A stretch of 19,149 nucleotides of DNA from Macrostomum lignano (GCA_002269645.1 NIVC01005237.1:1-19149), one strand, 5' to 3'; shown: positions 1,124 through 19,149, counted from the stretch's first letter. The notes: a model not told the origin generated them from the letters alone. A program made the numbers and translations.

Positions 1124-2258
1124 GTGAGGCTCCTCACAGCCGCATTCGCTCTGCTGGCGACAACCTGCTCGACAGTCACAGGCGATGACCCCGGCAGCTG
1201 CGCCAACCAGAAGCTGTTCTCTTTAGTCCTGCCCCACAGCCTGACGGTGCCGCAGTCCTTCAAGTCCGTGCAGGCAGTTGGCAGCGAGCTGCAGTGCTCT
1301 CTGCAGTGCCGGGCCCAGTCGCGGTGTCTGCTTCGGCTTCTACTGGCAAGAGGCAAGTCTGTCGTGCCAGCTGTTCAGCATCGCTGCGTTCTTCAGCAGC
1401 AAGTCGCTGTGGCAGCCGAACGACAAGCCGGTCGACGTCTTCGCGAAGCCGTTCGACTGTGAGTTTGAATGCAATGGCATAGATGATTTAAGGGAAATAT
1501 TTTGGCCTGTAATCACAGAGATTCCAAGCTCATATTCAAATATCTGTCCTTCGCTTTGGTTGCTGCAGTACCGACAGAAGCAGTTTGAATTTTCATAACT
1601 CCAGCCTGATCGCAACGTACGTGTGTGAGAGCTACCCCAGGTGCTCCCAGTCCAAAACCGCAAGTCCCATGGGTCCGTCCCACAGAGCTCCTGTCCCGCT
1701 TGTTGAATCGCCGTAAATTTTCCGCGACAAATTTCTAAGCAAGCCCCATCCCAACCCGAGCGAAGCATAAAAGGACCATAAAAGTACAACTGGAGTTTCT
1801 CATCAAAACTCGCACTTATTCCGCCAATGTCTCTGTTGCAGCGTCAGCAGAAGCCATCCTGACTGTTCAACGCTGCAGTCAGATCTCTACTCACGGGAGC
1901 GCAGCCTGTGTCGAGCAATCGATGGCAACACGAATCAGAACTTTCACGGAGGCTCCTGCACCCACACCGAAGAGCGTTTTCCATTGGTGGCAGGCCGACC
2001 TCGCTCAGCAGTCCCGCATCACGGCAGTCCGCATCTTCAACAGGCAGGACTGCTGCCGCTCAGAGGCTCAACAACTTCACCCTGCTGGTTGACGATATCG
2101 AGTGCGCCAGGGTGGACGCGGATCCGAGCTTCTCCATCAAGACGGTCAGCTGCCTCGGCTACGGCAGTCGGGTTCGCCTCGTCAGTCGCTTGCCTGGTTG
2201 GGTGTTCAGCCTGTGCGAAGTTGAGCTGCTCGGCTTCACCGTCTCTGCGCTGCCTTAG
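1124..2258 (+). pseudogene. Signal peptide + PAN/apple + F-type lectin (FTP) gene, copy A; exons ~1124-1458 and 1842-2258; frameshifted
   Basis: Hydrophobic leader RLLTAAFALLATTC. PAN-like CSLQC..CFGFYW..SCQLF. GT donor at 1459 and AG acceptor at 1841, phase 1 as in copy B. FTP motifs WWQADL, NRQDCC, SLCEVE. Relative to copy B it has indels near 1321 (+1), 1909 (-1), 1975 (-2) and 2057 (+1), and the ATG at 1122 is out of frame. Confidence 0.8.
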
Positions 2259-2849
2259 TTGGACCGACTGAATGAGTCTTGATGAAAAATCAGCCTAAGG
2301 GTTTTCTAATGATCCTGTTAAACTCTCTTTTGAGTTCCTTTTTCTCATTTTAATTCGTTATTTTTACTAAATGTAACCGGGTTGTGGGCCCATATATGTG
2401 GACCATTTGGTTTTTTCAGTCTGATTTCTGAAGTCATAGTTTGTCGGCCCCATCATATTTTGTTATTTACATTCTTAATAAACTCTCAATACGTTAACTC
2501 GATTCCCTCTTCCCGCCCTCTCCACAATGCTAAAGCAAAAGCCCCACCATTGATGCATTGCTGTACCTCTCCCGTCTAGCCCAGCTAACTAAACCTGTTG
2601 GTAAGGTGGCTCCAATCTGAAGCCGTTTGTTGAAGCGTCGTGGTCATTCAGGCCTCAGTCTCCCGTGAGGTGAGGGTCCGGTTGAAACGAAGAGATAAAC
2701 AAGACGAGCGAAATCTGCACATAATGCAGTTTTGCAAATTCTGCAATTTTAAGTAAACTATAAACTAAGACAGCTTTGATTGAGTTTTTCTGTCTGTCAA
2801 TATGTTTACTCATGGCACTTCGGGATGGGGTCCGAATTGAGGTGCAGTC

Positions 2850-2851
<2 letters not shown>

Positions 2852-2899
<48 letters not shown>
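2852..2899. repeat. (CT)24 microsatellite
   Basis: Perfect dinucleotide run. Confidence 0.98.
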
Positions 2900-2901
<2 letters not shown>

Positions 2902-4787
2902 GCTTTCAGGAATCTCTATTGGATGTAGCTGTTCCTTGCGAGATGAGGACCGTTTGTGGACCACTGCACACCTTGAGCACAACAAGATGACAGTCATTGC
3001 AATGGGGCTCTGACTGGACCTCAATATGAATCCTCTCAATTATGCGTTTTACTTCTTCTTCTTCGAATTAAGTCACCTTTATAACTTCCTCTGATTGTTA
3101 GTGTCAATTGTGTTCTTATCTGTTTCTTAGAACTCACAGTCATAAGTGGTAGATATACTACATGCGATGCTGTACCCTGCGATCGCTGGGGCCAGAGTCC
3201 ACAGTTTTTTAAAACGTGTCCAAATCCTCCTGGAAGAGATCCCGAAGCCGCACGGAGGTCTGTAACCCTAACACCGTCGTTATCAAGGCAGACAGTAGGG
3301 CAGGGGTCGGCAAACCGACCCTTTCGAACTTCACAATAGCAATCTGACCCACTAGCTTATGGTTCGATCATGTCTCTGCTCTATTCATTTTGCTTTTCCG
3401 CAGTAATAAGCAAATTTCTAAAATACCAATAACAAACTTTAATTACAACAGTCTAGCTTACACAACTTATTGTCAATAAGATGGCGAGCAAAGCAATTAT
3501 AGGTTAGCAAACAAGAGTGCACAGATTGCAACGCACTCAATTAGAGTCAATATTTTGTATGAAATCCACAGTGTAGTACTGGCTCTCCCTGGTTTTCCAT
3601 TGCGTCTAAAGTCGTTAAACAGCGCTTCTGCACCAGAAATGCAACAATTTTCCCCTAGAAGTGTTGCTATGCTGTTTTAACTGGTGCCAGTTGATGAAGA
3701 TAATGGAATGAGCTGCAATTTGGCTACTCAAACTAGCTGATAATAATTGGTTGTTTACCGACACCTGAGAAAGTTGAAACAGCTGAAACACCTGAAGCTG
3801 AAACTGAAACTGGAAGCTGAAACACCTGAGAAAGCAGGCAGCTGAAAAACTAAAAAATAGACTTTCATTGTATAGTATCTTCTTGCAGTTACCTGTTTTC
3901 TAGCCTGGTCGATTCTGTGATGGCCTGGGCTGGGAATCGCTCCGCAGCCCTGGCCATATGGTCTGCCGCTCCCACTGACTATGTTTGTTTGCACTCTGTT
4001 TGTTCCCCTCACTGACTCACCGGAGTCACCCCTTCTGAACACTTCCCCATGCTACGTATGCACCATTCGTACGCGTGTTCCATGCATCGTGCCACAGCGC
4101 GCCTGGCTATGTTGGGGCCCAGGAGCCCGCAAATATATGGCGAAGCTAGACGATACGGTTTGGTTTACATCTCTTATTCCTGTCTGCCACTCGGGAGCCA
4201 ATTCCCAGTGCATAGCGAATCAAGACTTCGTTCTCGAGTCATTACAGATTCCCCCACCCAGAAATCTAAAAAACGTTCGTTCTCCGCGTCTCCGTACAAC
4301 GCTTCTCAAAGCTTTAAGCTGAGTGATCGATAAATCGAATGATTGATCGATTGATGAATAAAAACATCTTCAGCTGTATAAATAAGTGATAGAAAACCCA
4401 GATTAATAAATTGACTTGATCATTAGTCCTTTTTGTTAGAAGCAGAAATATGACTTTTATGCTATCTATTGTTTTTGGTTTATTTCGAGTTTTTATGAAA
4501 TTTTACCTTCAAGCCACACAGTCAAACGGACACACTGAAACCGGACATGGTTATTCGGACACGCATATAAAACTTTATTTGAGTTGAAAAGGGTTCTCCG
4601 TTCTCCTATATTGTCAAGCTGTTGAACAGAATTTTTTACTAGACAACTGAAGTTGAAGAACGCTACGCTCAGATTTTCTTAGAAATGAGCTCGAGACGAA
4701 TAAAGAACTTGATATTTTCCATATTGCTAGTGCATCATCTCGAAAATTAATTAATTAATTAATTATTAATTAGGCTTAATTAATAGC

Positions 4788-5685
4788 CTAAGGCAGCGCA
4801 GAGACGGTGAAGCCGAGAACCTCAACTTCGCACAGGCTGAACACCACATCACGCAAGCGACTGACGAGGCGAACCCGACTACCGTAGCCGAGGCAGCTGA
4901 CCGTCTTGATGGAGAAGCTCTGAGCTACGTCCACCCTGGCGCACTCGATATCGTCAACCAGCAGGGTGAAGTTGTTGAGCCTCTGAGCGCAGCAGTCCTG
5001 TCTGTTGAAGATGCGGACTGCCGTGATGCGGGACTGCTGAGTGAGGTCAGCCTGCCACCACTGGAAGTCGCCTCCGCCGGTGTGGGTGCAGGAGCCTCCG
5101 AAAAAGTTCTGATCCGTGTTACCATCGATTGCTAGACCGCAGGGTGCGCTCCAGGAAGTAGAGATCTGACTGCAGCGTTGAACAGTCAGGATGGATTCTG
5201 CTGACGCTGAAACAGCAAAAACTGCGAAATCAAAGAGACAATAGACTGTAGTTAATCCCTGGACTGCAGATTGTTTACTGCATCCCTATTGTTCTCTAAC
5301 GCGCATATTTAACAAACAGTTCCGTGTAAAACTCACAGTCAAACGGTTTCGTGAAGACGTAGACTGACTTGGCTCTCGACTTGGCGCTCGGCTGCCACAG
5401 CGACTTGCTGAAGAACGCAGCGATGCTAAACAGCTGGCACGACAGACTCGCCTCTTGCCAGTAGAAGCCGAAGCAGACACCGGACTGGGCCCTGCACTGC
5501 AGAGAGCACTGCAGCTCGCTGCCAACTGCCTGCACGGACTCGAAGGACTGCGGCACCGTCAGGCTGTGGGTCTAGGCTAAAGAGAACAGCTTCTGGTTGG
5601 CGCAGCTGCCGGGGTCATTGCCTGCGACTCCAGCGTTGGTGCTAACTAACCATGCAGAAATGACTAGAATGCCAGTATGTTTCAT
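4788..5685 (-). pseudogene. Signal peptide + PAN/apple + F-type lectin gene, copy B; exons 5685-5337 and 5206-4788 (255 codons plus stop); one in-frame TAG at 5574-5572
   Basis: ATG 5685 begins MKHTGILVISAWLV. 130-bp GT-AG phase-1 intron. Exon 2 is fully open: AIDGNTDQNFFGGSCTHT..WWQADL..NRQDCCAQRL..SLCEVEV, with the exact H-X26-R-X-D-X4-R fucose-binding motif. Premature stop in exon 1. Confidence 0.85.
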
Positions 5686-7292: not shown

Positions 7293-7298
7293 CATGTT
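7293..7298 (+). repeat. Left 6-bp target-site duplication CATGTT
   Basis: Directly abuts the left TIR; identical to 17757-17762. Confidence 0.93.
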
Positions 7299-7892
7299 AC
7301 TACTAAGGACTGGCAGATGGCTCGATTTTGCGAAGGTCCGTCGGGCTGATGTCGGCCTCTAGCACCGCGGCAAGGTGCTCCCTCGGGGTGTACCACCTCC
7401 CCCCGGGGTGTACCTCCAGCGGGGTGGGTGTCCAGCGAGTGTACCTCCAGCGGGGTGGGCCTCCCGCGAGTGTACATCCGGCCGGCTGGGCGTCCAGCGA
7501 GTGTACCTTCAGCGCATGGGCCTCCCTCGGGGTGTACATCCGGCGGGGGGATTCCCGCCCCTCCCACCAATGTCGTGTGCACGCGGTTAGTGTAGGAAGG
7601 AAACCCCCGATGCTGACGCAGCCCTGTACACTGAGCAACCGGCCCCCCATGCGGGGGACAGAGAGCAGCCCTGTAGCAGGAGGGGTAGTGCGTGGAGAGC
7701 CGCCATCCCCCTGTAGCAGGGGACAGATAACAGGCGACCCCTGTAGCAGTATGAGGTGGGGTACAAAGAGACACGGGGTGCTGGGACAGAGAGTGCGTGG
7801 AGGCACCCTGCGCTGCCCTGGCATGTCGCAGCACGCGGCGTGGACAGAGAGGGAGTGTGAGTCACACGGAGGGACAGAGAGCTCCCCCCAGG
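7299..7892 (+). repeat. Left terminal inverted repeat (~594 bp)
   Basis: Reverse complement of 17167-17756; starts ACTACTAAGGACTGGCAGATGG. Differences seen are mostly homopolymer-length changes. Confidence 0.95.
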
Positions 7893-7983
7893 GCAGTAGA
7901 GGACTTGAAAAGAAAAAACACGTATTTTAGTTGTTTCAGGTTCAGGCCATCCGGCAAACAGAGCAAAGCTCTCCAACAGTGTT

Positions 7984-8613
7984 TTATTTAGCATAAACTA
8001 CGGGGTAGCGCCCCAACACATTAGCATAGTAGCGAACAGATGCGTTCTGCAAGCAATTAACAATCAAGTAGGAGTAGGGCTCCCTAGTGGCGTCTTCGTA
8101 CATTTGAACAAAACTTTTTGGGTTAGCGGGGACAAGCTGCTTTGCAATATGGGCGACTGTACTAACGTCCCGTACATTGCGGAACAATACAAGGTAGTTT
8201 GCGTTAAGGGATTGAGTGCGGTGCTCCTTGCCCTTGGCAAACAGGTTTTGTACAAGGTACCAAAGCCGGAATCCCACATGGCTGACTTTGCGAGTGAAAA
8301 ATGCGGTAAAAGCAGCGTTTTTTTCCATGGCTTGCATTTGATCATCGACAACGAGTAGAATATTCGGAGCGGGAACATAGGTTTCAGGGTTAAATGTAGA
8401 CGAGCGAAAATTGACAGGGTACGGTAATTCAAACAGTTCCGGGTCTGGATAGTGCCCAAACCAATCAACGCGAACAGGCTTAGGGTCCTGAAAAAACTCG
8501 TTTCGCAGCAATTCTTTAACAAGAGTTGTTTTTCCGCTCTGGTTAACACCAGCAAAAATCGCCGAAGTATTTGGAGCAAACTTTAGAGCGTCAGGATCAA
8601 TTGTTTGGTACAT
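7984..8613 (-). CDS. FtsK/HerA (A32-like) genome-packaging ATPase, 209 aa from ATG 8613
   Basis: Walker A AGVNQSGKT, Walker B LLVVDD, LVQNLF and RTQSLNANYLVLFRN motifs typical of Polinton ATPases. Confidence 0.92.
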   Translation of the reverse strand: MYQTIDPDALKFAPNTSAIFAGVNQSGKTTLVKELLRNEFFQDPKPVRVDWFGHYPDPELFELPYPVNFRSSTFNPETYVPAPNILLVVDDQMQAMEKNAAFTAFFTRKVSHVGFRLWYLVQNLFAKGKEHRTQSLNANYLVLFRNVRDVSTVAHIAKQLVPANPKSFVQMYEDATREPYSYLIVNCLQNASVRYYANVLGRYPVVYAK

Positions 8614-8647
8614 TTTCAGGGCGAGTTGACACTCCAAATATTAAAAA

Positions 8648-9084
8648 CTATTTTATTTGTAGAACATGTTTTCGAACCATCAAATCATTTTCAAGCAGAT
8701 TGGTAGAGTAACATTCCCTTAAAATCTTTTCAATCGACAACCCCTCTAAAAAGTGCTTTTCGGCCACAAAAATCACATGCGGCCCACACGCTACACTTAG
8801 AGGGTGTTGAACAGGGTGGCGATTCATAGCAACAGGTGAATGTACATGCTTCGAGATCCAAGCCGAGAGCAATTCCGGCACGGGTTCAATACACAGGGGT
8901 CAAAAAATGTCACACTCTTATCATCGTGTAGGCAAATCAGTCCCCAGTGGGTGCCTGGCAGATTACCCGTGTCAAAATTAATTACATATGCAGCAGGGTA
9001 AACAGGTGCAGGAATTCTGTCGAGAGGGCAAACGTGCACTTCCACAGGTAGTTTTAAACGCTCCAAAATTTCCAACGTGTTCAT
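8648..9084 (-). CDS. Adenain-like cysteine maturation protease, ~145 aa, split by one missing base near 8882-8899
   Basis: Catalytic set GTHW (His), FFDP (Asp), VQHP (Gln), VACG (Cys) is spread over ORFs 8824-9084 and 8648-8881. Adding one C to a C-run joins them. Confidence 0.88.
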
Positions 9085-10363
9085 ACGTAGTCCAGAATGG
9101 GCTGGCGGCCTCTAGTGATTTGCACCGCGTTGTCAAAGTAACCAAACACCAAAACGTTAATCCCGGCAGGTAGGGCTGCAGAAAACTTTATCTGTAGGGT
9201 CAGATTCCCTCTCTCGCGAGGCATGCTATGTCCACCCAGTTCCATGTCGGGCATTAGATTCCACGCAAATAAGCAGTAACCGGCGCGATAATCCGAATAT
9301 GACAGGTCAATGTCCAAATCGCGATTCATTTTCCCTAGGCTCTTAAACAGCATGGCGTATTCGCGAGCATAGTTTTGGGCAGCGAACCTTGGAGTGAATG
9401 GTTGACCGCACAGACTGACACCGTCCTTGTACAGGGCCACACTGTCCGCCCCAAATGGCTCGAAATTGAACGGATTATGGGTGGCCACCCCGTTATATGC
9501 GGCACTATTGACCATCCCATAATGACAAGTTTAGGCTTCTGCTCCGGGAAAATATTATTGATTGACACGTCGCGAACTCCTACAGCGACAGAGGTGTTGT
9601 GTACAACGAGGCGCTCGATGGGGTAGACTGCATTCTGAGTCGCCAGCTGTTCTTCAATCTCCAAGGCCAGTTGGGGGTTAGCCTTTACCCGACGAACGTG
9701 TAATTTTGCACTTTGAAGAACCAACTTTGCATCAACCCCTTCGGCGTGATTCTCTACAACGAATCCCGAATTTTGCAGAGTGAGCGTAACCACCATATCA
9801 GTGTAGGGTAGCAGCATACGATCGTTGGTGACAAAAAAGTCGAGACTAAGAGGGCCATACAGGTGAAATGTTCGAGAACCGGCAGCCATCGCCTTGCGAG
9901 TTACAAAGCCAGGATTTCCAACCGCAGCCATTTGACCCCCAGCGTCTTTAGCGTAGCCCATCATCCGCAGTTGGTTAGACTTTGAATCAGACCCATAACT
10001 CAAGCATGTACGAATGTACGCCTTGTAGGCGTGGTTGTTGTTGCTAGACTCGATATGTGTACCATTTATGGAAAGAGACACGTTTTTGAACATGGTCTCC
10101 AAGAGGTAATTGATTGGCGCCACGTTTGAATCCGCCGCCAAATCGGCTCCATTAGCTCTTTTAATACAACCTTTAATCTCGAGATCAATGTCATTAAGAT
10201 CGACAAACGTCTCGCCGCCCACAATTCTAAACTCAACCACACTCGCATTTTCGACGCTGGCAACCGGGTGGATTTCTTCAGTAGTTGAACCTACAGCGGC
10301 AATCTGGTGGGCTCGAGGGGCAAAGAGCTCAAACTCGGACTTTGTACACAGACACTCGGACAT
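9081..10363 (-). CDS. Major capsid protein (double jelly-roll, Polinton type), ~427 aa, split by one missing G at 9516-9518
   Basis: MSECLCTKSEFELF start, VEFRI, DLNDIDL, NNNHAYKAY, AYNG..NPFNF, GYCLFAWNL, GNLTLQIKF and DNAVQI match Polinton capsid motifs. ORFs 9335-10363 and 9081-9515 join at MG/MVN. Confidence 0.9.
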
Positions 10364-10392
10364 GTTTAGTAGACAGACTCGATTCGGCGAAT

Positions 10393-10737
10393 CTAATTGA
10401 AGCGGGGCTTTTTATTTATAGTGCTGAAAATGTCTGAATTGAGACGCTTCGGAGCCTTTTTTCTTCTTCGTCCGCTACCCCTTTGGGTAACCGTGTCTTT
10501 AAAGGCGTCCTTGGCAGCCTGAACAGAATTGCGCAGGACAGACTCCTTCAAATTGCCTCCTTGCTCGAGGCTATCGTTAACAGTAGTTGCTAGGGCTCTA
10601 GTACCATGACGGAGAACGTTTTTACCAAAACTCTTTAGAATTGGCAGCGCGAAGCGGGCAATGCTTCCAAACAAACCGTTGCCCCTCTGGGCGCCCGCGA
10701 AAACAGGCAAAGCTCCACCAATCAGAATAGAAGGCAT
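10393..10737 (-). CDS. Small basic virion protein with amphipathic helix (pVI/cupiennin-like core protein), 114 aa
   Basis: QRGNGLFGSIARFALPILKSFGKNVLRHG, a second QRGSG, and an Arg/Lys tail. Lies between penton and major capsid as in adintoviruses. Confidence 0.7.
   Translation of the reverse strand: MPSILIGGALPVFAGAQRGNGLFGSIARFALPILKSFGKNVLRHGTRALATTVNDSLEQGGNLKESVLRNSVQAAKDAFKDTVTQRGSGRRRKKAPKRLNSDIFSTINKKPRFN
10413..10420 (-). promoter_or_regulatory. TATAAATA motif upstream of the major capsid gene
   Basis: 49 nt before ATG 10363; extends to AATAAA. Confidence 0.65.
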
Positions 10738-10777
10738 GATTAAGCACTAGGATATAGTTTACTGAGGCTGTGCTGTT

Positions 10778-10785
10778 TATTTATA
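10778..10785 (-). promoter_or_regulatory. TATAAATA motif upstream of the pVI-like gene
   Basis: 40 nt before ATG 10737; contains the penton stop codon and AATAAA. Confidence 0.65.
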
Positions 10786-11911
10786 GCTTCTTTTCGCGGA
10801 TGTTAACGCTCAAGACGGTCTTGCCCCTCATTACTTTTGTCATATCCCTGCCCATATCATCGTTAATTTGTACTTCAATAGTTTTGAATGGGTGCTTAAC
10901 CAGCGGTAGATATGCCGGATTGACAAACTCGTAGTACTCGCGACCGCCCTGAACTTTGGGATCCATCGGTATAGCTCCCAACAGAGGAACTTTAACGTCT
11001 CCTACAATAACAGAATCGACTATGCTCGAATAGATGTACATTGTTTGTATTCCACCGGTTAATTCCATTGATGCGTTTGCGTAGAAATCCGATATACCGA
11101 AAAATGGGGTTGTATAATCATGCTCTGGGAAACCAAGCACGCTGGTCAAGCGCCCCAACCCAAACATGTAATCCACCGAGCCGATGTAATAACACCTATT
11201 CGTAACTTCGCTGTATCCGAAAAAGTCCTTTCTAGGTGCTGGAGCCGCTATGAGATCTTTGATCCGTTTCCAAATTAAATCGTTGAGTTCCTCCACCAAT
11301 CTTTTAGGTGTACTATAGTATCCACCCTGCATAAAATAGATTTGATCAGACGCTGCGCTAGTAACTTGTCTTATTATTGGAGCGTGGTCCATTGACTGTA
11401 CAGTCGGTTCCTCAACAACTGCGGTGATGGAGGCTGCACACCCCGCGTGTAATACGAGTTCAGTAGGTAGATCCTCATTAGACTCGAAGCCGGCGACTAG
11501 TTTAAACACCTTGGGTAGGGCATCCGGGAATTTGATGCCGACGGTGGATTTTGAAGTATTCACAATCATAAAGGCGGTTGGGGATGTTCTTAAAAAGACA
11601 ATTTTCTTATTATCCCCTTCAACGTATCGGATACCGTTTAGAAAGCCGGAAATACATTCTTCAGGGGTTTTCAGACCCGCTGCGAGACAAAGGCTTGCAA
11701 ACGACGAAGCCGTCAAGAGGCCCTCCTGTTCGCGAATGGTGATCGGTATAGATTTTTTGAAAGATTCAAATTCTTTGGTAAAGTAGATCCGTTCGAGGCA
11801 AACCTCATGATTCGGAAAGTGGAGAGTGTCCGGTAAATTAATAAAATAATGAGCCGGATTATTTTCGGGATAGTGCTCGGGGCACGCATTGCTAGGCAGA
11901 AAGAGATGCAT
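10781..11911 (-). CDS. Minor capsid protein (penton), 376 aa from ATG 11911
   Basis: HLFLPSN..YPENNPAHYFINLP, GGYYST..LVEELN, YIYSSIV..VIVGDVKVPLL and IEVQINDDMG match Polinton penton blocks. Strong Kozak context GCTACCATG. Confidence 0.88.
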   Translation of the reverse strand: MHLFLPSNACPEHYPENNPAHYFINLPDTLHFPNHEVCLERIYFTKEFESFKKSIPITIREQEGLLTASSFASLCLAAGLKTPEECISGFLNGIRYVEGDNKKIVFLRTSPTAFMIVNTSKSTVGIKFPDALPKVFKLVAGFESNEDLPTELVLHAGCAASITAVVEEPTVQSMDHAPIIRQVTSAASDQIYFMQGGYYSTPKRLVEELNDLIWKRIKDLIAAPAPRKDFFGYSEVTNRCYYIGSVDYMFGLGRLTSVLGFPEHDYTTPFFGISDFYANASMELTGGIQTMYIYSSIVDSVIVGDVKVPLLGAIPMDPKVQGGREYYEFVNPAYLPLVKHPFKTIEVQINDDMGRDMTKVMRGKTVLSVNIREKKL

Positions 11912-11923
11912 GGTAGCCACGCA

Positions 11924-13003
11924 TTAGTTATTATTACGTTGACGTATATTTATAACTTCATTTACAGGTACAAATGAATTAAAAGTGTCGGGATAACCGC
12001 GCCAGCTAACGTAATGGTGCGCAACACCATTTATTAACACGTTTCTACGCAAAACTTTATTGATTACAAAACGCTCGGGTCGGGTAGATTTGGACAGTTC
12101 ATTGTAGTAAAACCGTCCCTCAATCACTTCACCAGACAAATCAGAAATACGATAAAAATGTGGGGGTCCAGGGCAAACTTTGGATATAATGTACACCTCC
12201 TCACTATACATGTCGTATGCCTCCTTGTCGAATGCCCTGCGAGATTTCGAAATTCTCACAAAATCCCCCTTTTTATATACGGGGTCGTCTTTTTGCTGAT
12301 CCGGGTAGAGCTTTTCCCACACACGCTTCTGATTGTGGAACCCTACACTTGACGGTTTCATCTCAATAGTAGAATGCGTCGTGTTGTTGTAATTGCCTAT
12401 CAAATTAGGTAAGTAGTCAACCCAACGCCACGTGTTGTTGTGCTCAAAGTAGCGAGCCAGACGCTTTCGAAGAGTTCTAATCAGCCTCTCGGCCATGTTT
12501 GCCTTGTACACAGAGTTGGTGCTGTACATTTTAACATTATTGTCTTTTAGTATGCGGCGCATTCGCTGATTATAAAACTCGGTACCCCGATCCACGTGAA
12601 GGTAAAGGGGGCGGGCAGGGAAATCATTCGCCAACATTGACTCAAACGCTGCGGGGGTATCACTCTTTAGTTTAATTGCCCTACAAAAAGCCTGCTTACT
12701 AAGCACATCAATAATAACTAGTATATATTTATGTCCGTCATTCCAACGTTTGTATCGCGACATGTCCATCAAATCGGCTTGTAGAGTTTCCATGAATCCT
12801 CCCGACATTACTTTTCCCGTTTTAAATGTCCTGTTGACTCTCCGGTGACGGGTGTAACTCGGTTGGGTTTCTAGCCATTCCCTGGTTTGGCGTCTTGTCA
12901 GGTTTGGCGCCAGACGTTTGGCCTCCTGATAGACACGGGCAGCATTTGAAAAAGCGGCGGCTCCTTGTTCGTAAACTCGACGAAGAGCGGTTAGAGCCCT
13001 CAT
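11924..13003 (-). CDS. Retroviral-like (RVE, DDE) integrase with C-terminal chromodomain, 359 aa from ATG 13003
   Basis: QADLMD (D), HVDRGTEF (D), AERLIRT (E), YNNTTHSTI, and chromodomain-like YVSWRGYPDTFNSFVP. Confidence 0.95.
   Translation of the reverse strand: MRALTALRRVYEQGAAAFSNAARVYQEAKRLAPNLTRRQTREWLETQPSYTRHRRVNRTFKTGKVMSGGFMETLQADLMDMSRYKRWNDGHKYILVIIDVLSKQAFCRAIKLKSDTPAAFESMLANDFPARPLYLHVDRGTEFYNQRMRRILKDNNVKMYSTNSVYKANMAERLIRTLRKRLARYFEHNNTWRWVDYLPNLIGNYNNTTHSTIEMKPSSVGFHNQKRVWEKLYPDQQKDDPVYKKGDFVRISKSRRAFDKEAYDMYSEEVYIISKVCPGPPHFYRISDLSGEVIEGRFYYNELSKSTRPERFVINKVLRRNVLINGVAHHYVSWRGYPDTFNSFVPVNEVINIRQRNNN
11947..11954 (-). promoter_or_regulatory. TATAAATA motif upstream of the penton gene, inside the integrase 3' end
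   Basis: 35 nt before ATG 11911. Confidence 0.65.
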
Positions 13004-13100
13004 TGACAACAAGTGTGGATGCACAGCATGAATAGTTGCACGTAATGTCGGCTGGGGAGTTGTCTACACAAAGCTTTGACGCGGCTGCTGCTGCGCCCAT
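12822..13100 (-). CDS. Small MG-start, Cys-rich ORF (92 aa) upstream of and overlapping the integrase in another frame
   Basis: First ATG after the TATAAATA at 13137-13144; Kozak G-3/G+4; sequence MGAAAAASKLC..YSCC..KCCPCLSGG. Confidence 0.45.
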   Translation of the reverse strand: MGAAAAASKLCVDNSPADITCNYSCCASTLVVNEGSNRSSSSLRTRSRRFFKCCPCLSGGQTSGAKPDKTPNQGMARNPTELHPSPESQQDI

Positions 13101-13135
13101 GACCGCCGGCGCGCGGTTATGTTTGGACTAGGGTT

Positions 13136-13762
13136 CTATTTATAAAGAGTCACGTATTTTTTCTTTTTCTCGGGTGGTCTTAGTTGGTAATCGTGATATT
13201 TACCCACCCCGGTACCTCGATCGACAAGTTTGGGCATAGCATTTACACCTTTGTTGCGCGTGGTCGTTAAATCGCGGGTGTCTGTCGCAATTGTGTGCTC
13301 ATATTCATCGCGGTAATCGTCGGTACCAACCATATGGTCAACCTTCTTTTCCTCCACAGGGAGCTGTTTCCGACCGAGCATAGACATTGGTATACGGGCC
13401 TTGTCTAGCAGAGCCCAGAAAGCGGTTGAATATTTCGGGTGATTATTAGTGTTGGTGGTGACGGCTTGTAGAAGATCAAAAACGTTGCTGCCACCCCAAG
13501 TTTCACCATCAAAAACGACTTCCCACGATTGGTTGTAATTTAGGCTGGGGTGCTTTTCTGTTAGTATATTCCATATACGTTGTTGCCTATCAGAAAATAG
13601 CTGCTTTGTCGTCTTTTGGGGTTTTACTTTAGCCAATTGGGTCTGTAGCTTTGCATTGTACTCTACAAGTTTTTCGTACTCCGATTTTGGGGCAATTTCT
13701 CGCGGAGTACCCTGTCTAAGCTGATTGAATTCCTCCTCGGGGACCACAACGTACTTGTCCAT
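13136..13762 (-). CDS. Conserved Polinton hypothetical protein, 208 aa from ATG 13762
   Basis: WEVVFDGETWGGSNVFDLL resembles a block seen in an uncharacterised Polinton/adintovirus core gene; basic C-terminus. Confidence 0.6.
   Translation of the reverse strand: MDKYVVVPEEEFNQLRQGTPREIAPKSEYEKLVEYNAKLQTQLAKVKPQKTTKQLFSDRQQRIWNILTEKHPSLNYNQSWEVVFDGETWGGSNVFDLLQAVTTNTNNHPKYSTAFWALLDKARIPMSMLGRKQLPVEEKKVDHMVGTDDYRDEYEHTIATDTRDLTTTRNKGVNAMPKLVDRGTGVGKYHDYQLRPPEKKKKYVTLYK
13137..13144 (-). promoter_or_regulatory. TATAAATA motif upstream of the MG-uORF/integrase
   Basis: 36 nt before ATG 13100; overlaps the stop codon of the upstream ORF. Confidence 0.65.
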
Positions 13763-13764
13763 TT

Positions 13765-14127
13765 TCAACGTCGTTGTCCTAGCAGACCACCAAACAGTCC
13801 AGTGATTAACGGTGCAGCAATCTTGGCGAGAATTGGTAGGAATCCTCCAACTTGAGGGTCCGATAGTATCATATTCTTCTTCCTATTTATAGACAGTTTT
13901 TTGTCGGCCATGTCATGCAGGGCTTCTCTATAACGTTTCAACCTTGCAAACTGTCTAGGGGATAGATCGATATTGCCCTTGAGTACATTGTGGCTTAACT
14001 CGCACAGACACTGCATCAACTCATTATCGGCTCCCCTAATAATGGCCCTCCTTCGATGTGGTCGCGCGTCACCGAGCTCCTCTAGCTCGCGACGGCAAGA
14101 ACAAAGACGAGAAATTCCGTTTGTCAT
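13765..14127 (-). CDS. Adenovirus pX-like virion protein with C-terminal amphipathic peptide, 120 aa (alternative starts 14145 or 14154)
   Basis: LMQCLCELSHNVLKGNIDLS..LKRY block and QVGG|FLPILAKIAAPLITGLFG, which resembles adenoviral pX GG|(F/I)LP. Confidence 0.75.
   Translation of the reverse strand: MTNGISRLCSCRRELEELGDARPHRRRAIIRGADNELMQCLCELSHNVLKGNIDLSPRQFARLKRYREALHDMADKKLSINRKKNMILSDPQVGGFLPILAKIAAPLITGLFGGLLGQRR
13884..13891 (-). promoter_or_regulatory. TATAAATA motif inside the pX-like ORF, upstream of the 13762 gene
   Basis: Exact 8-mer; 121 nt before ATG 13762, longer than the other copies. Confidence 0.45.
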
Positions 14128-14172
14128 TATTAAGGTGGTAAGCATTGCGTGCATACATGTGCATATTTTGTT

Positions 14173-14180
14173 TATTTATA
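14173..14180 (-). promoter_or_regulatory. TATAAATA motif upstream of the pX-like gene
   Basis: Intergenic; 45 nt before ATG 14127; extends to AATAAA. Confidence 0.65.
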
Positions 14181-14192
14181 AGCAAAGCATAA

Positions 14193-14711
14193 TTAGAGTT
14201 GCAGAATAGCAGTCACGTGGTCGTACATTTTACACAGTTCGTCATAGTTTCGTATTCCTAGGAACACTAACCGACCATTCTTTCCGCACAGCAGGCACTT
14301 GGCCTTGCGGAATGGGGACTTTATTACAAGCCCATTGAATACCTCACTCTCCCACTCAACCCAGCGCGAGCTCGAGTTGGCAAGGCGGAAAAAGTTTGGC
14401 TTAACATTAACTTCTGCACGATAAGTACCGGTAGTGATAACAACAGAGTTTGGTTTACATTGAGCAAAAAGACGCAGCACATCGTTGGTTGATTGGCAAC
14501 CAAAAACAATGGCAGATAATGAACGTTTGAAAAAGTTTATTGTACACTTTCCGATCCTCAGGTTGTACAATGCCCGGGGTCTATGAAACGTTCTAGCGCG
14601 CGCCCAGTCCAAGTTCGGTAGGTGGTTCCACCTTGCGCAAAACACCCTGTTTACGCACACGACGTTCTGCAAGCGGTTTTTTCGGTTGCTTTTGTTTCCG
14701 CTCAGCTCCAC
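14193..14711 (-). CDS. TATA-binding-protein (TBP)-like protein, ~160-aa two-repeat core; no in-frame AUG
   Basis: By-eye match to the eukaryotic TBP core: LQNVV~LQNIV, TINFFKRSLSAIVFGCQS~TALIFSSGKMVCTGAKS, WESEVFNGLVIK~YEPELFPGLIYR, NGRLVFLGIR~SGKVVLTGAK, ELCKMYDHVTAIL~EIYEAFENIYPIL. Order and spacing are preserved. Confidence 0.75.
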   Translation of the reverse strand: MELSGNKSNRKNRLQNVVCVNRVFCARWNHLPNLDWARARTFHRPRALYNLRIGKCTINFFKRSLSAIVFGCQSTNDVLRLFAQCKPNSVVITTGTYRAEVNVKPNFFRLANSSSRWVEWESEVFNGLVIKSPFRKAKCLLCGKNGRLVFLGIRNYDELCKMYDHVTAILQL

Positions 14712-15273
14712 CAGCTCCGCGCTTGCGTCCTACCTTGATTTTTAACGGTGGAATCCAGTAGCAGCGGTCAAACGCCTGCTTGGGAGCTTCTATGAATTGC
14801 AGTTGTTGAATTTTCGGCACCGCGGTTAGAACCGAGTCGTGAATCACCGCCGTGTCTAGGGCGAACAGTACTCTATAGTAGCCCGTCTTGTTCTTGTAGT
14901 CGGTGCACAACTTGCCGCTCTTGTCGTACATTTTAAAGTCGTGAGCCAATCCGAATGCAGCGCTGTCGCAGCCAAAAGTGGGGTTGTACCCCAATAGCGC
15001 CATTCCTTGGATAGAGAGCTGGTGACACACGGAATTGAACGCTTCTGGTATGCAGCTCTCCAAGTGCTTTTGGGAAAGAATGATGAATTCGCGGCCTTCA
15101 TTGTCGGTTCTCACACCCTTGACAATCAGTACGGGCGTCGCATTGGCAAGATAGAGAGGGCCCTGTTCGTCGTACTCAATGTCGTACGTCTCGGTTCCGT
15201 TGTAGCTTGGACCTCTCGACTTGAGAGAGAATAGGTCGATCCTAACACTATTGTAGTCTTGAACGGTATCCAT
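14593..15273 (-). CDS. Putative OB-fold ssDNA-binding protein with basic NLS-like tail, 226 aa from ATG 15273
   Basis: FKMYDKSG..YYRVLFALDTAVI..AVPKIQQLQF resembles the C-terminal strands of viral SSB (DUF2738/T7 gp2.5-like) families; tail KVGRKR..KQKQPKK. Weak by-eye assignment. Confidence 0.4.
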   Translation of the reverse strand: MDTVQDYNSVRIDLFSLKSRGPSYNGTETYDIEYDEQGPLYLANATPVLIVKGVRTDNEGREFIILSQKHLESCIPEAFNSVCHQLSIQGMALLGYNPTFGCDSAAFGLAHDFKMYDKSGKLCTDYKNKTGYYRVLFALDTAVIHDSVLTAVPKIQQLQFIEAPKQAFDRCYWIPPLKIKVGRKRGAGGAERKQKQPKKPLAERRVRKQGVLRKVEPPTELGLGAR

Positions 15274-15317
15274 GTTGCTGCTGCTGCTGAGAGTGGGTCT
15301 CGCTCCTGAGCGCCTCC

Positions 15318-15325
15318 TTATATAC
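15318..15325 (-). promoter_or_regulatory. TATA box (GTATATAA) upstream of the SSB-like/TBP-like unit
   Basis: Intergenic, 44 nt before ATG 15273; differs from the TATAAATA of the other genes. Confidence 0.55.
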
Positions 15326-15361
15326 CCTTGGCGCGGAGGGTGGGGTGGCTGGGCGTTTTTG

Positions 15362-15877
15362 TTATAGTCCTTCTTTAACGACACTTTCCGGTGTTGGAAA
15401 TCCGGAAAAAATAAACCTTTTGTTTCGATCTTCTGGTCGAGGGGTTTGAGGCGTGTCGTGAATGCAGCTGCAGTGAGGGTTGATAGTCAACTTCGCTAGC
15501 ACTGGTCTACTGTGTTTAGGTCGCCAAATCCTTTGGTGTTCCGTCCACGAGGGAGCAATCGGCTGGTGATTCCGGTACCGTATTTTCTCACGATGATCCT
15601 CTTGTAATATTGGGGCAATTATCTGCTCCATTCTTTGAAGATTGGCTTTGAAATGCATCTTGTCTCTAAAGTAGTAGTCAATTCGGGCATCTGTATATTC
15701 TTGGGTGCTGTAAGGCCCTTGCCCAATTTCGTCTACCTCGACATTAAAGGTGACTAATCGTTCGGGAATTGGTTTGCCGTGACAAATGCATAACCAGTCT
15801 GTGGACTTTTTCAGGGTCTCGTACTCTGCCCTTTCTTTGCTCGATAAAAGCGGGTAGTCTCGAGAAATCCAGCTCAT
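15362..15877 (-). CDS. Orphan hypothetical protein, 171 aa
   Basis: ATG-started ORF that fills the gap; ATGA overlap with the upstream stop; no recognised motif. Confidence 0.65.
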   Translation of the reverse strand: MSWISRDYPLLSSKERAEYETLKKSTDWLCICHGKPIPERLVTFNVEVDEIGQGPYSTQEYTDARIDYYFRDKMHFKANLQRMEQIIAPILQEDHREKIRYRNHQPIAPSWTEHQRIWRPKHSRPVLAKLTINPHCSCIHDTPQTPRPEDRNKRFIFSGFPTPESVVKEGL

Positions 15878-16227
15878 TCCTCTGACTCGTCAGATTCGTC
15901 GAGAAAGAAATAGTGGAAGAAATTGTCGACTCTATTCTTTTCAACTGCACAAAGTATTTTGTCTGACAGGTGAAATTCGCAGTCTCCTTTTACGTACAGG
16001 CGCTTCCCGTCGATAACTTTGATAGATGCGCCGCCTCCGAGATCGTAATCTGTGCAGCTAGTGCCCAGAAATTTCATTCGATGCCATTGTGCTCGACTAA
16101 ACACGGCTCCTGGACAGCTACAGTTTTGACAGTGGATGCGGAAACGCGGCTTGTTTGGGTCCCAATATCCCACTTCCAGCACTGCGTTGTCAACGTGGGT
16201 GTACACTATTTCCGATTGCCAGTACAT
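15874..16227 (-). CDS. PC4 (transcriptional coactivator p15/ssDNA-binding)-like protein, 117 aa from ATG 16227
   Basis: EVGYW..RFRIH..GAVFSRAQWHRMK resembles PC4 GISL..EQW..LK; YDLGGGASIKV may be a second degenerate repeat; acidic tail. Confidence 0.4.
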   Translation of the reverse strand: MYWQSEIVYTHVDNAVLEVGYWDPNKPRFRIHCQNCSCPGAVFSRAQWHRMKFLGTSCTDYDLGGGASIKVIDGKRLYVKGDCEFHLSDKILCAVEKNRVDNFFHYFFLDESDESEE

Positions 16228-16258
16228 TTCGATATTGTTGAGAAATACCAATTTTATT

Positions 16259-16266
16259 TATTTATA
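16259..16266 (-). promoter_or_regulatory. TATAAATA motif upstream of the PC4-like gene
   Basis: 31 nt before ATG 16227; contains the Fic stop codon and AATAAA. Confidence 0.65.
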
Positions 16267-17040
16267 GGCTGCCGTCTGAACAGATTTCCAACCATTCCCT
16301 CCACTGTAGAACGGTTCTCTCAATTGATAAAAGTAAATACGCCGCTAGGAGCCCCCGGTTGCTGCTGCGCGCTTCGTAAAGACAGTTGAGATATGTGTCT
16401 CTATTTGCATACGCAAATGATACGGGTTCTGGCAGAATCCGGTTGATCAACTTTGATAATAACAACCTAGCAGTTCTACCATTGCCGTCGCTAAAGGGGT
16501 GTATGGTGAGAAACTTTTCTAGGAAATATGCTCCTGTCACTACTGCATCACGCAAGATTTGTGGCTCTTTTATGTCTCTAGTTAATTTTACCAGCTGCCG
16601 TTCAATATTTTCTGGGGCACTGTAATACATACTCGCGCCTGCTGGCTTGGCGTGCTTAATTCTATACGATCCTGCATTCGGGAGCAGTCCTCTGCACACG
16701 CGTGTGTGAACTTGTCTAACAAACTCTGTGTCAATTAACCCCCTCGTGTCATTGAGGTGTATTGCCGCACTCCATAGATTGGCTGTGACCATACAGGACC
16801 GGTTTTTATCGCTTCTTCTGCTTCCTCCCAAGTCAACGCCACCTCTCTCTCCTCAATGTTTACTTCAGTTACGAATGCCAGCCGGGCTAGATACGTGAAT
16901 TCTAAGCGCTCCTTTGCGGTCAATCCCTCGATTCTTTTCCTAGTGTCTGATAACAATCTTTCAATGAGGGGTAATCTGGCGCGCACGCTCTCGTTGCTGA
17001 AATAGGGGTTATCAGTTATACCCTCTTCCATGTTCTCCAT
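16262..17040 (-). CDS. Fic/Fido-domain protein (putative AMP-transferase), ~259 aa, split by one missing A at 16803-16807
   Basis: Complete signature HPFSDGNGRTAR, plus VHTRV..GSYR. The N-terminal half (NIEEREVALTWEEAEEAIK, resembling AIEGNTLT..ET) lies in the overlapping ORF 16735-17058. Confidence 0.9.
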
Positions 17041-17166
17041 ACAGAGGGTTTTGTACACTGCTTCTATTTATGGTTGCATTAACACGTTGCTCGCGGCCTG
17101 TCTGTCCCTCTGCAGCCTGGGGGGCTCTCTATCACTCACCGCCGGTCTGTCCCTCTACCACCCCGG

Positions 17167-17756
17167 CCTGGGGAAGCTCTCTGTCCCTCCGTGTGACTCA
17201 CACTCCCTCTCTGTCCACGCCGCGTGCTGCGACATGCCGGGCAGCGCAGGGTGCCTCCACGCACTCTCTGTCCCAGCACCCCGTGTCTCTTTGTACCCCA
17301 CCTCATACTGCTACAGGGGCCGCCTGTTATCTGTCCCTGCTACAGGGGGATGGCGGCTCTCCACGCACTACCCCTCCTGCTACAGGGGCTGCTCTCTGTC
17401 CCCCGCATGGGGGGCCGGTTGCTCAGTGTACAGGGCTGCGTCAGCATCGGGGGTTTCCTTCCTACACTAACCGCGTGCACACGACATTGGTGGGAGGGGC
17501 GGGAATCCCCCCGCCGGATGTACACCCCGAGGGAGGCCCATGCGCTGAAGGTACACTCGCTGGACGCCCAGCCGGCCGGATGTACACTCGCGGAGGCCCA
17601 CCCCGCTGGAGGTACACTCGCTGGACACCCACCCCGCTGGAGGTACACCCCGGGGGAGGTGGTACACCCCGAGGGAGCACCTTGCCGCGGTGCTAGAGGC
17701 CGACATCAGCCCGACGGACCTTCGCAAAATCGAGCCATCTGCCAGTCCTTAGTAGT
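17167..17756 (-). repeat. Right terminal inverted repeat (~590 bp)
   Basis: Ends CCAGTCCTTAGTAGT; reverse complement of 7299-7892. Confidence 0.95.
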
Positions 17757-17762
17757 CATGTT
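17757..17762 (+). repeat. Right 6-bp target-site duplication CATGTT
   Basis: Identical to 7293-7298. Confidence 0.93.
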
Positions 17763-18968: not shown

Positions 18969-19149
18969 CCCTGGTGCTGGCGCCCTGGTGCTGGGGCCCT
19001 GGTGCTGGCGCCCTGGTGCTGGCCCCTGGTGCTGGCGCCCCTGGTGCTGGCGCCCCTGGTGCTGGCGCCCCTGGTGCTGGCGCCCCTGGTGCTGGCGCCC
19101 CTGGTGCTAAAGGGCCCTGGTGCTAAAGGCCCTGGTGCTAAAGCCCCTG
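18969..19149. repeat. GC-rich minisatellite, 14-15 bp unit (C)CCCTGGTGCTGGCG, ~12 copies, running off the window
   Basis: Direct tandem copies; the last units vary (CCCTGGTGCTAAAGG). Confidence 0.95.

Follow-up and report, generated by a model that had tools for sequence, protein, structure and literature searches.

The element and its boxed genes

The stretch of DNA analysed here, 19,149 nucleotides from Macrostomum lignano (GCA_002269645.1 NIVC01005237.1:1-19149, called the window in the following), holds a whole Maverick/Polinton-like integrated element of 10,458 bp (7299..17756), in which seven identical copies of the 8-mer TATAAATA punctuate a row of genes encoded without exception on the minus strand, among them a gene for a protein resembling the TATA-binding protein TBP. 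The element is bounded by terminal inverted repeats (TIRs) of ≈ 590 bp (left, 7299..7888, with a 31-nt tandem array inside; right, 17170..17756), the main arm segments of which are 97–100% complementary; its termini read ACTACT...AGTAGT, and it is flanked by a 6-bp target-site duplication without mismatch, CATGTT, on the left (7293..7298) and on the right (17757..17762). G+C-rich tandem arrays with periods of 31 nt (also 16 and 62 nt) are located in the TIRs at 7404-7548 and 17509-17660; the G+C content of the whole element is 49%. The genes follow one another in the order Fic, p125, p171, TBP-like gene, p129, p210, MG-ORF (a small open reading frame, ORF) with the rve integrase, p376, p114, major capsid protein, protease and ATPase. 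Among the features by which Polintons/Mavericks are recognised, the element has the long TIRs with a 6-bp duplication, the rve integrase and a Maverick-homologous capsid gene, while the protein-primed family B DNA polymerase did not turn up in ORF searches between the TIRs; no other recognisable replicase, primase or helicase was found in any of these ORFs either, the coding space being fully assigned. The copy is slightly decayed, with one frameshift each in the capsid, protease and Fic genes in comparison with intact relatives; all seven TATAAATA boxes and the splice signals of the TBP-like gene are intact.

The seven minus-strand copies of TATAAATA listed in a first-pass annotation of this DNA were all recovered exactly at their positions between 10413 and 16266, together with an eighth copy on the plus strand (4377-4384); the earlier statement that the opposite strand carries none is correct within the element (zero copies) and incorrect for the window. 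Over both strands of the window 0.52 copies are expected, and none of 200 dinucleotide-preserving shuffles, the type of control used throughout, reached eight. On the coding strand of the element the shuffle mean is 0.14, and seven copies were reached in 0 of 1000 shuffles, which bears out the enrichment anticipated in the annotation. The plus-strand copy lies outside the element, and its count is compatible with chance. It is part of a separate, TIR-bounded repeat (1174-5629), unrelated to the element and without recognisable protein domains, whose inverted arms (1174-2258 and 4788-5629, ≈ 1 kb) are 86–97% complementary in their main segments.

Measured from the first T to the ATG of the next gene, the seven boxes of the element stand at 39, 26/35/53 (for three in-frame ATGs of p129), 129, 44, 43, 48 and 57 nt. 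The earlier count of six copies 31–49 nt in front of an ATG, taken from the end of the motif, holds outright for five of them, and for the sixth only if the ATG orthologous to the start in relative L001 is used. The overlap of three copies (16259, 13137, 10778) with the upstream stop codon, the extension of four of the seven to AATAAA, and the position of several copies (three: 13891, 11954, 10420) within the preceding gene's coding sequence were all seen as described. One-mismatch variants as a class are at chance level, with 12 beyond the exact copies against ≈ 13 expected, and reading this class as further boxes was dropped, as it is not enriched; the two variants singled out earlier, TACAAATA (8654) and CATAAATA (17065), are present and nonetheless promoter-like in their spacing, at 48 nt and 32/41 nt before an ATG.

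For comparison, eight further contigs (L001–L006, L091 and L092) form the clade set together with the window; identities are 81–90% for the capsid protein, 67–71% for the integrase and 38–42% for p376. At the upstream end of the gene row, the variant box CATAAATA (17065..17072, context CCATAAATA), of the same type as the box of the L007 lineage discussed below, precedes the alternative ATGs of the Fic-domain gene (16262..17040; Pfam Fic, E=3.6e-14), which is a single ORF in L005. In the window Fic shares the strand of the other genes, and in L001 (3-722) and L005 (48-1579) it lies on the opposite one; in L005 it adjoins a gene of the Bcl-2 family. Because a close relative carries this Bcl-2 gene, the sequence points to an animal host for the lineage. 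The first TATAAATA box (16259..16266) holds the Fic stop codon TAA, extends to AATAAA and is followed by p125 (15874..16227, ATG at 16227), the stop of which overlaps the start of p171 (15362..15877); neither protein has an assigned function, and the L001 homolog of p171 is preceded by a TATAAATA at +48. The TBP-like gene (14193..15273) comes next and is introduced by a box of a second class, TATATAAG (GTATATAAGG; 15317..15324), 51 nt 5' of its ATG at 15273; the octamer GTATATAA is located at 15318-15325. Box 2 (14173..14180) extends to an AATAAA 17 nt past the stop of the TBP-like gene and precedes p129 (13765..14154), which has no assigned function and a hydrophobic C-terminus. Box 3 (13884..13891) lies within p129, 126 nt 5' of its stop codon and 129 nt before the ATG of p210 (13136..13762, no assigned function), and the same internal site exists in L001 (+122) and L005.

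Box 4 (13137..13144) overlaps the p210 stop TAG and stands 44 nt before the ATG of MG-ORF (12822..13100), a small ORF with the start MG...CNYxCCxS, which is kept in L001 (3814-4020) and L007 (261-512). It begins ≈ 94–97 nt upstream of the integrase ATG, overlaps the integrase start and is read in the +2 frame with respect to that gene, and in the window, L001 and L007 the lineage box is found 41–48 nt before the ATG of MG-ORF rather than before that of the integrase. MG-ORF may encode a small protein that is possibly acylated, and translation of the integrase may begin at the ATG further downstream; an intron joining the two was considered and rejected, since less than ≈ 20 nt separate the conserved peptide from the start of integrase homology. 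The rve-type integrase (11924..13003; Pfam rve, E=1.7e-9) shares 67–71% identity with its relatives, and its coding tail contains box 5 (11947..11954, of the TATAAATAtac type), 43 nt before the ATG of p376 (10781..11911), a putative minor capsid or vertex protein. By far the fastest-evolving core protein (38–42% identity, compared with 81–84% for the capsid protein), p376 is single in the window and present as two tandem paralogues in L001–L004 (L001 5000-7328), each with its own TATAAATA, a pattern compatible with a role at the vertex or in host recognition.

Box 6 (10778..10785) holds the p376 stop TAA, extends to AATAAA and lies 48 nt before the ATG of p114 (10393..10737), a small basic protein, whose coding tail in turn contains box 7 (10413..10420), which again extends to AATAAA and reads TATAAATAAA in five of five loci, 57 nt before the capsid ATG. 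The major capsid protein gene (9081..10363) is 81–84% identical to intact relatives and has homologs in the genomes of Ephemera danica (mayfly) and Amia (bowfin) and in 414 metagenome stretches. The putative maturation protease (8648..9084) is without a box of its own. Because its ATG overlaps the capsid stop in every locus (window 9081-9084, L002 ≈ 3391-3396, L091 2449-2453, L092 2283-2287) with no box between, the sequence suggests one bicistronic capsid–protease unit with coupled termination and reinitiation. The last variant box, TACAAATA (8654..8661), extends to AATAAA and precedes the putative packaging ATPase (7984..8613), in which a Walker A motif is present and whose stop is overlapped by an AATAAA; this ATPase variant, TACAAATAAA, recurs in L092, 47 nt before the ATPase ATG.

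The proteins p125, p171, p129 and p210, as well as the 180-aa N-terminal domain described below, have no detectable relatives, and a PHROGs scan of ten element proteins returned a single weak match, to the ATPase. An Rfam scan of the window gave zero matches, as did a Pfam scan of ten ORFs flanking the element. Outside the element, a 15-nt tandem repeat of ≈ 10 copies close to the end of the window (18969-19143) gives Gly-Ala-Pro repeats when read in one frame.

The spliced TBP-like gene

The first-pass annotation had described an SSB-like and a TBP-like gene side by side, of which the latter is indicated by Pfam, PDB and Foldseek searches alike. The TBP-like ORF (14193-14729), which has no ATG, matches Pfam PF00352 with E=9.5e-5 and 22.6 bits, just under the curated cut-off of 22.9, and its homolog P0010 scores 24.6 bits, above that cut-off. 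In a phmmer search of the PDB, 20 of 21 matches were TBP, and with an AlphaFold2 (AF2) model as the Foldseek query all 44 matches at E≤1e-3 were TBP, over ≈ 175 columns and both repeats, followed by a drop to E>0.1. An alignment with the bona fide TBP P0030 likewise spans both repeats of the core. Profile, sequence and modelled fold thus argue for a real member of the TBP family, albeit a very rare type, with six matches at E≤1e-3 among 1.84 billion representatives.

The SSB-like identity was rejected: the 180-aa domain has no Pfam or PDB match, whether searched as a single sequence or as a profile, and its ORF forms the first exon of the TBP-like gene. (A single-sequence AF2 model of this domain, with a predicted local distance difference test score, pLDDT, of 33, was left out of the analysis.) Its conserved part ends at ATCAAG/GTAGGA, and TBP homology starts directly after TTGCAG/, which delimits a GT-AG intron of 67 nt (14667..14733). 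The same phase-0 donor and acceptor are found in L001, L005 and L006, where the intron measures 64, 187 and 67 nt, respectively, and the intron interior is poorly conserved across the four loci. We conclude that the two ORFs are, as predicted from these signals, exons of one gene, with exon 1 (14734..15273) contributing the 180-aa N-terminal domain and exon 2 (14193..14666; 157 aa and stop) the two-repeat TBP core; the corresponding genes occupy 1712-2786 in L001, 2243-3443 in L005 and ≈ 511-1584 in L006. In all four loci the frame of exon 1 stays open through the intron into a basic tail resembling a nuclear localisation signal (ending at 14593 in the window), such that an intron-retained isoform is plausible. 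Ribosomal frameshifting instead of splicing is a formal alternative for joining the two frames, which overlap in all four loci; in L006, however, the TBP frame opens just 6 nt before the acceptor.

Conservation of the boxes and the two box classes

Conservation of the motif in relatives, proposed earlier as a check, was found throughout the clade: in the nine loci TATAAATA occurs 30 times on the coding strand and once on the other, and in five of the seven loci tested the observed count was reached by none of 1000 shuffles. Over 26 motif-anchored sites, from which information content and offsets were computed, all eight positions carry 2.0 bits, and the flanks do not exceed 0.7 bits except for a preferred A two bases past the box. 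TATAAATA recurs at orthologous junctions, namely TBP to p129, inside p129 before p210, p210 to the integrase unit, integrase to p376 (always TATAAATAtac), p376 to p114, and p114 to capsid (always TATAAATAAA, 5/5 loci). The distance from the first T to the gene's ATG is 39–57 nt at 19 of 22 measurable sites, and two long offsets (129 and 122 nt) belong to the one orthologous site inside p129. The position relative to the upstream stop, by contrast, varies (−6 to +13) or shows no relation at all, some boxes lying deep in coding sequence, although stop overlap and AATAAA extension are each conserved for a given junction. It is the downstream gene that stays constant in relation to the box, which therefore behaves as a promoter element would and not like a terminator.

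The lineage itself is rare: only eight p376 homologs were found among 5.8 billion proteins, close capsid homologs number a handful, and scans of IMG/VR, made with the capsid protein and with alignments of capsid and TBP, gave one distant locus altogether.

The boxes fall into two classes. As the first-pass annotation had noticed, the TBP-like gene uses a different box, which reads TATATAAG in the window, L001 and L006 and TATATAAA in L005, i.e. TATATAAR in four of four loci, 38–52 nt before the ATG; TATAAATA never precedes this gene, and TATATAAR is found on this gene alone. Both TATAAATA and TATATAAG match the TATAWAWR consensus. Accessory genes use other sequences, Fic having CCATAAATA in the window and both Fic and Bcl-2 in L005 being without a consensus box.

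In the sister lineage L007, the capsid protein of which is 47% identical to that of L002, TATAAATA is absent and CCATAAAT(A/G) occurs four times, always on the coding strand (1471, 2664, 3085, 4341), three copies standing 44–46 nt and one 92 nt before an ATG; a fifth box, CATAAATG (213), lies 48 nt before MG-ORF. On sequence, this reads as a concerted, lineage-wide shift of the box. The remaining 37 long loci served as outgroups, distant relatives with 28–39% capsid identity, in which tblastn and hidden Markov model searches detected no TBP-like gene. In the clade, 6 of 13 and 6 of 12 ORFs have the ATAAAT core in front of them, in L007 3 of 6, and in each of these 37 loci 0–2. Consensus boxes number 5+1 in the window and 6+1 in L001, where they are uniform, and 0–2, of varied sequence, in ≈ 30 long TBP-less relatives. 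The exception is L008, an AT-rich, TBP-less distant relative with consensus TATA boxes of four types 35–45 nt before many of its genes. The same motif system was thus not found in any TBP-less relative among the sampled loci, and a de novo search of eight distant loci for 6-mers enriched upstream of ORFs yielded nothing comparable. In L024, tenfold TGTAAATA was considered as a lineage-specific box and rejected, being a terminal tandem array.

Readers of the boxes and known systems

It can be rationalized from these observations that each TATAAATA serves as TATA box in a compact nuclear core promoter for RNA polymerase II (Pol II) that drives the next gene or short gene cluster, with transcription predicted to start ≈ 30 nt past the first T and to leave leaders of ≈ 10–25 nt. 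Tight packing of the genome would have laid the box over the end of the upstream gene, where at some junctions it would supply that gene's stop codon and at others, as TATAAATAAA, the AAUAAA of the upstream unit, such that the transcripts would form nested, 3'-co-terminal families. Of the two classes, the uniform TATAAATA on most core genes and TATATAAR only on the spliced TBP-like gene, the latter would be read by the host machinery, and the product, in which a TBP core of altered saddle is joined to a novel N-terminal domain, would then act on the uniform boxes. To this explanation as a whole we assign a probability of roughly 55%. Its parts differ in strength. That the box is a Pol II promoter element is very probable on its geometry and conservation, and two differently regulated promoter classes are probable from the distribution of the two boxes; that the element's own TBP reads TATAAATA directly is a proposal we make tentatively, at slightly under even odds. 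A dedicated reader is indicated because the boxes are letter-perfect even at the usually loose positions 7 and 8, because the TBP gene is excepted, and because the boxes of L007 shifted in concert, which is hard to explain via a near-invariant host TBP alone; the TBP paralogue of the element is the obvious, though still uncertain, candidate for this role. Taken furthest, and held more tentatively still, the data would describe a private Pol II code in a polymerase-less 10.5-kb animal Maverick-like virus, in which a spliced TBP paralogue of its own reads an invariant 8-mer, reader and box co-evolve (TATAAATA in one lineage, CCATAAAT in the other), and the TBP gene, on a TATA box read by the host, is the entry to a cascade.

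The most serious competitor, possible in our view and yet somewhat doubtful, is that host TBP/TFIID alone reads the boxes, their identity being kept as TATAAATA is near-optimal and a compact element needs strong promoters, and that the TBP-like protein acts otherwise, such as by sequestering or redirecting host general factors or at other promoters. This would agree with the perfect match of the 8-mer to TATAWAWR, with the presence of consensus boxes in the TBP-less L008, and with a TBP-like core short of two of the four DNA-kinking phenylalanines. Host TBP accepts many variants, however, yet all 30 copies in the clade agree at each of the eight positions; moreover L008 employs four different boxes, the box of the TBP gene is distinct in four of four loci, and those of L007 moved together to CCATAAAT.

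Several further points weigh against a role of the element's own TBP and, in part, against the proposed transcription map. TATAAATA is already an ideal site for host TBP, and a viral reader is not required. The AF2 model of the TBP-like core is weak (pLDDT 55), and of the four intercalating phenylalanines one is kept per repeat, the other two being Arg and Cys, invariant in the clade; TBP relatives without the intercalating phenylalanines (TRF2/TLF) are not known to bind TATA, and the altered saddle may thus leave the protein unable to do so. The association of the TBP gene with the motif comes from a single clade and counts as one evolutionary event, and the L007 contig is without the region in which a TBP gene would sit. 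Among the boxed genes are several not known to be virion genes: the first-pass annotation had labelled the boxed set late (virion) genes, a label that is doubtful, as the box is also carried by the integrase unit and by a number of small ORFs of no assigned role. Start sites, use of poly(A) sites, temporal order and the identity of the TBP that reads the boxes are, finally, what we infer from the DNA. In addition, four sense AATAAA hexamers lie within coding sequence, in exon 2 of the TBP-like gene (14541, 14325) and in the integrase tail (12061, 12035); these could be unused or mark alternative 3' ends.

That the 8-mer is mainly a 3'-end signal, combining stop codon and poly(A) signal or terminator, with its nearness to the next ATG a by-product of packing, is very improbable. 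It is true that three copies in the window run over a stop codon and four continue to AATAAA, and that this hexamer is strand-biased and concentrated at gene ends: the element has 11 on the coding strand against two on the other, and seven of the 11 are found at the ends of six genes (Fic with two copies, TBP gene, p376, p114, protease and ATPase), whereas genes without a terminal AATAAA overlap the following gene or border on it (p125/p171, p129/p210, capsid/protease). The spacing to the downstream ATG is tight, though, while the relation to the upstream stop ranges from −6 to +13 or is absent; box 13891 lies 126 nt before the p129 stop at an internal site shared with L001 and L005, and 16 of 26 tabulated TATAAATA sites are without the AATAAA extension. 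Because the extension is kept at certain junctions (p376 to p114; p114 to capsid, 5/5) and absent at others, a genuine dual role of the TATAAATAAA boxes as TATA box and poly(A) signal is supported at the sequence level, and the overall placement of the hexamers suggests nested, 3'-co-terminal transcription units, in line with the TATA-box explanation.

Even less credit is given to the motif as a promoter belonging to a large DNA helper virus, in the style of virophages and of certain Polinton-like viruses (PLVs), with cytoplasmic transcription by the helper machinery. One identical short motif before nearly all genes is indeed the virophage pattern, the element has no recognisable DNA polymerase, and the TAAAT inside TATAAATA resembles the poxvirus late core. 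Such an element should, on the other hand, be free of introns and of nuclear 3'-end signals, and the conserved GT-AG intron of spliceosomal type and the AATAAA signals at gene ends instead indicate nuclear expression. The consensus TATA box lies ≈ 45 nt and not 0 nt before the ATGs, the element is integrated in the chromosome with TIRs and a 6-bp duplication, and we know of no helper virus for it; a paper on insect PLVs with entomopoxviruses says nothing of promoters. A chance or compositional artefact of AT-rich intergenic sequence, for which the A+T content of the motif speaks and nothing more, is refuted by the shuffles (0/1000 in 5/7 loci), the 49% G+C of the element and the recurrence of the motif at orthologous sites of eight further contigs.

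Very little is known about transcription of Polintons/Mavericks in animal cells, and here an architecture can be read from the sequence, with a single invariant box to each gene, a regulator gene with a box of another type, and boxes shared with stop codons and poly(A) signals. It is so regular that transcript boundaries can be predicted and are therefore testable with existing RNA data. Should the element's TBP read the boxes, a small nuclear DNA virus outside the giant viruses would bring its own TATA-binding factor, and a natural case of a TBP-fold protein co-evolving with its DNA site would be at hand. For annotating this rare lineage, the 8-mer and its spacing are in any event good markers, as is the spliced TBP gene.

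In comparison with known systems, the element resembles Polintons/Mavericks and adintoviruses in its TIRs, 6-bp duplication, rve integrase and homologous capsid gene followed by protease and ATPase, and in the Bcl-2 gene of a relative; it differs by the missing recognisable replicase and by its size, 10.5 kb, typical Polintons measuring 15–20 kb. Its boxes share with canonical TATA promoters, for which TATAWAWR is the established consensus (e.g. the adenovirus major late promoter), the consensus match, the orientation of the gene and a position compatible with a start ≈ 30 nt downstream, just before the ATG. Cellular and most viral TATA boxes differ from gene to gene, whereas the element keeps its 8-mer letter for letter between genes and across relatives and overlays it on stops and poly(A) signals. 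With the promoter motifs of virophages and PLVs, which derive from giant viruses, it has in common a short identical motif upstream of most genes in a small, capsid-encoding, Polinton-related element; those motifs match the cytoplasmic system of the helper, in contrast to a nuclear Pol II TATA box accompanied by a GT-AG intron and AATAAA ends. Giant viruses and African swine fever virus (ASFV) also encode TBP-like proteins and are thus, like this element, DNA viruses with a TBP-fold protein of their own, but here the protein belongs to a 10.5-kb animal Maverick-like element, is joined by splicing to a novel 180-aa domain and keeps two of the four kinking phenylalanines.

Cellular TBP paralogues with dedicated promoter sets are represented by TRF1, TRF2/TLF and TBP2/TRF3. 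For viruses, the searched literature on TATA/TBP in Mavericks, Polintons and adintoviruses connects no encoded TBP of this kind with a promoter motif, nor are promoter motifs of Mavericks described there; the sole trace is a 'TBP' gene drawn on the map of a MELD virus (Fig. 5 legend of the adintovirus paper, PMC8502044). The element shares with the cellular paralogues a second TBP-fold factor with an altered DNA-contact surface, which could define a separate promoter class; those paralogues, however, are host genes, whereas the element carries the paralogue and its putative target boxes together.

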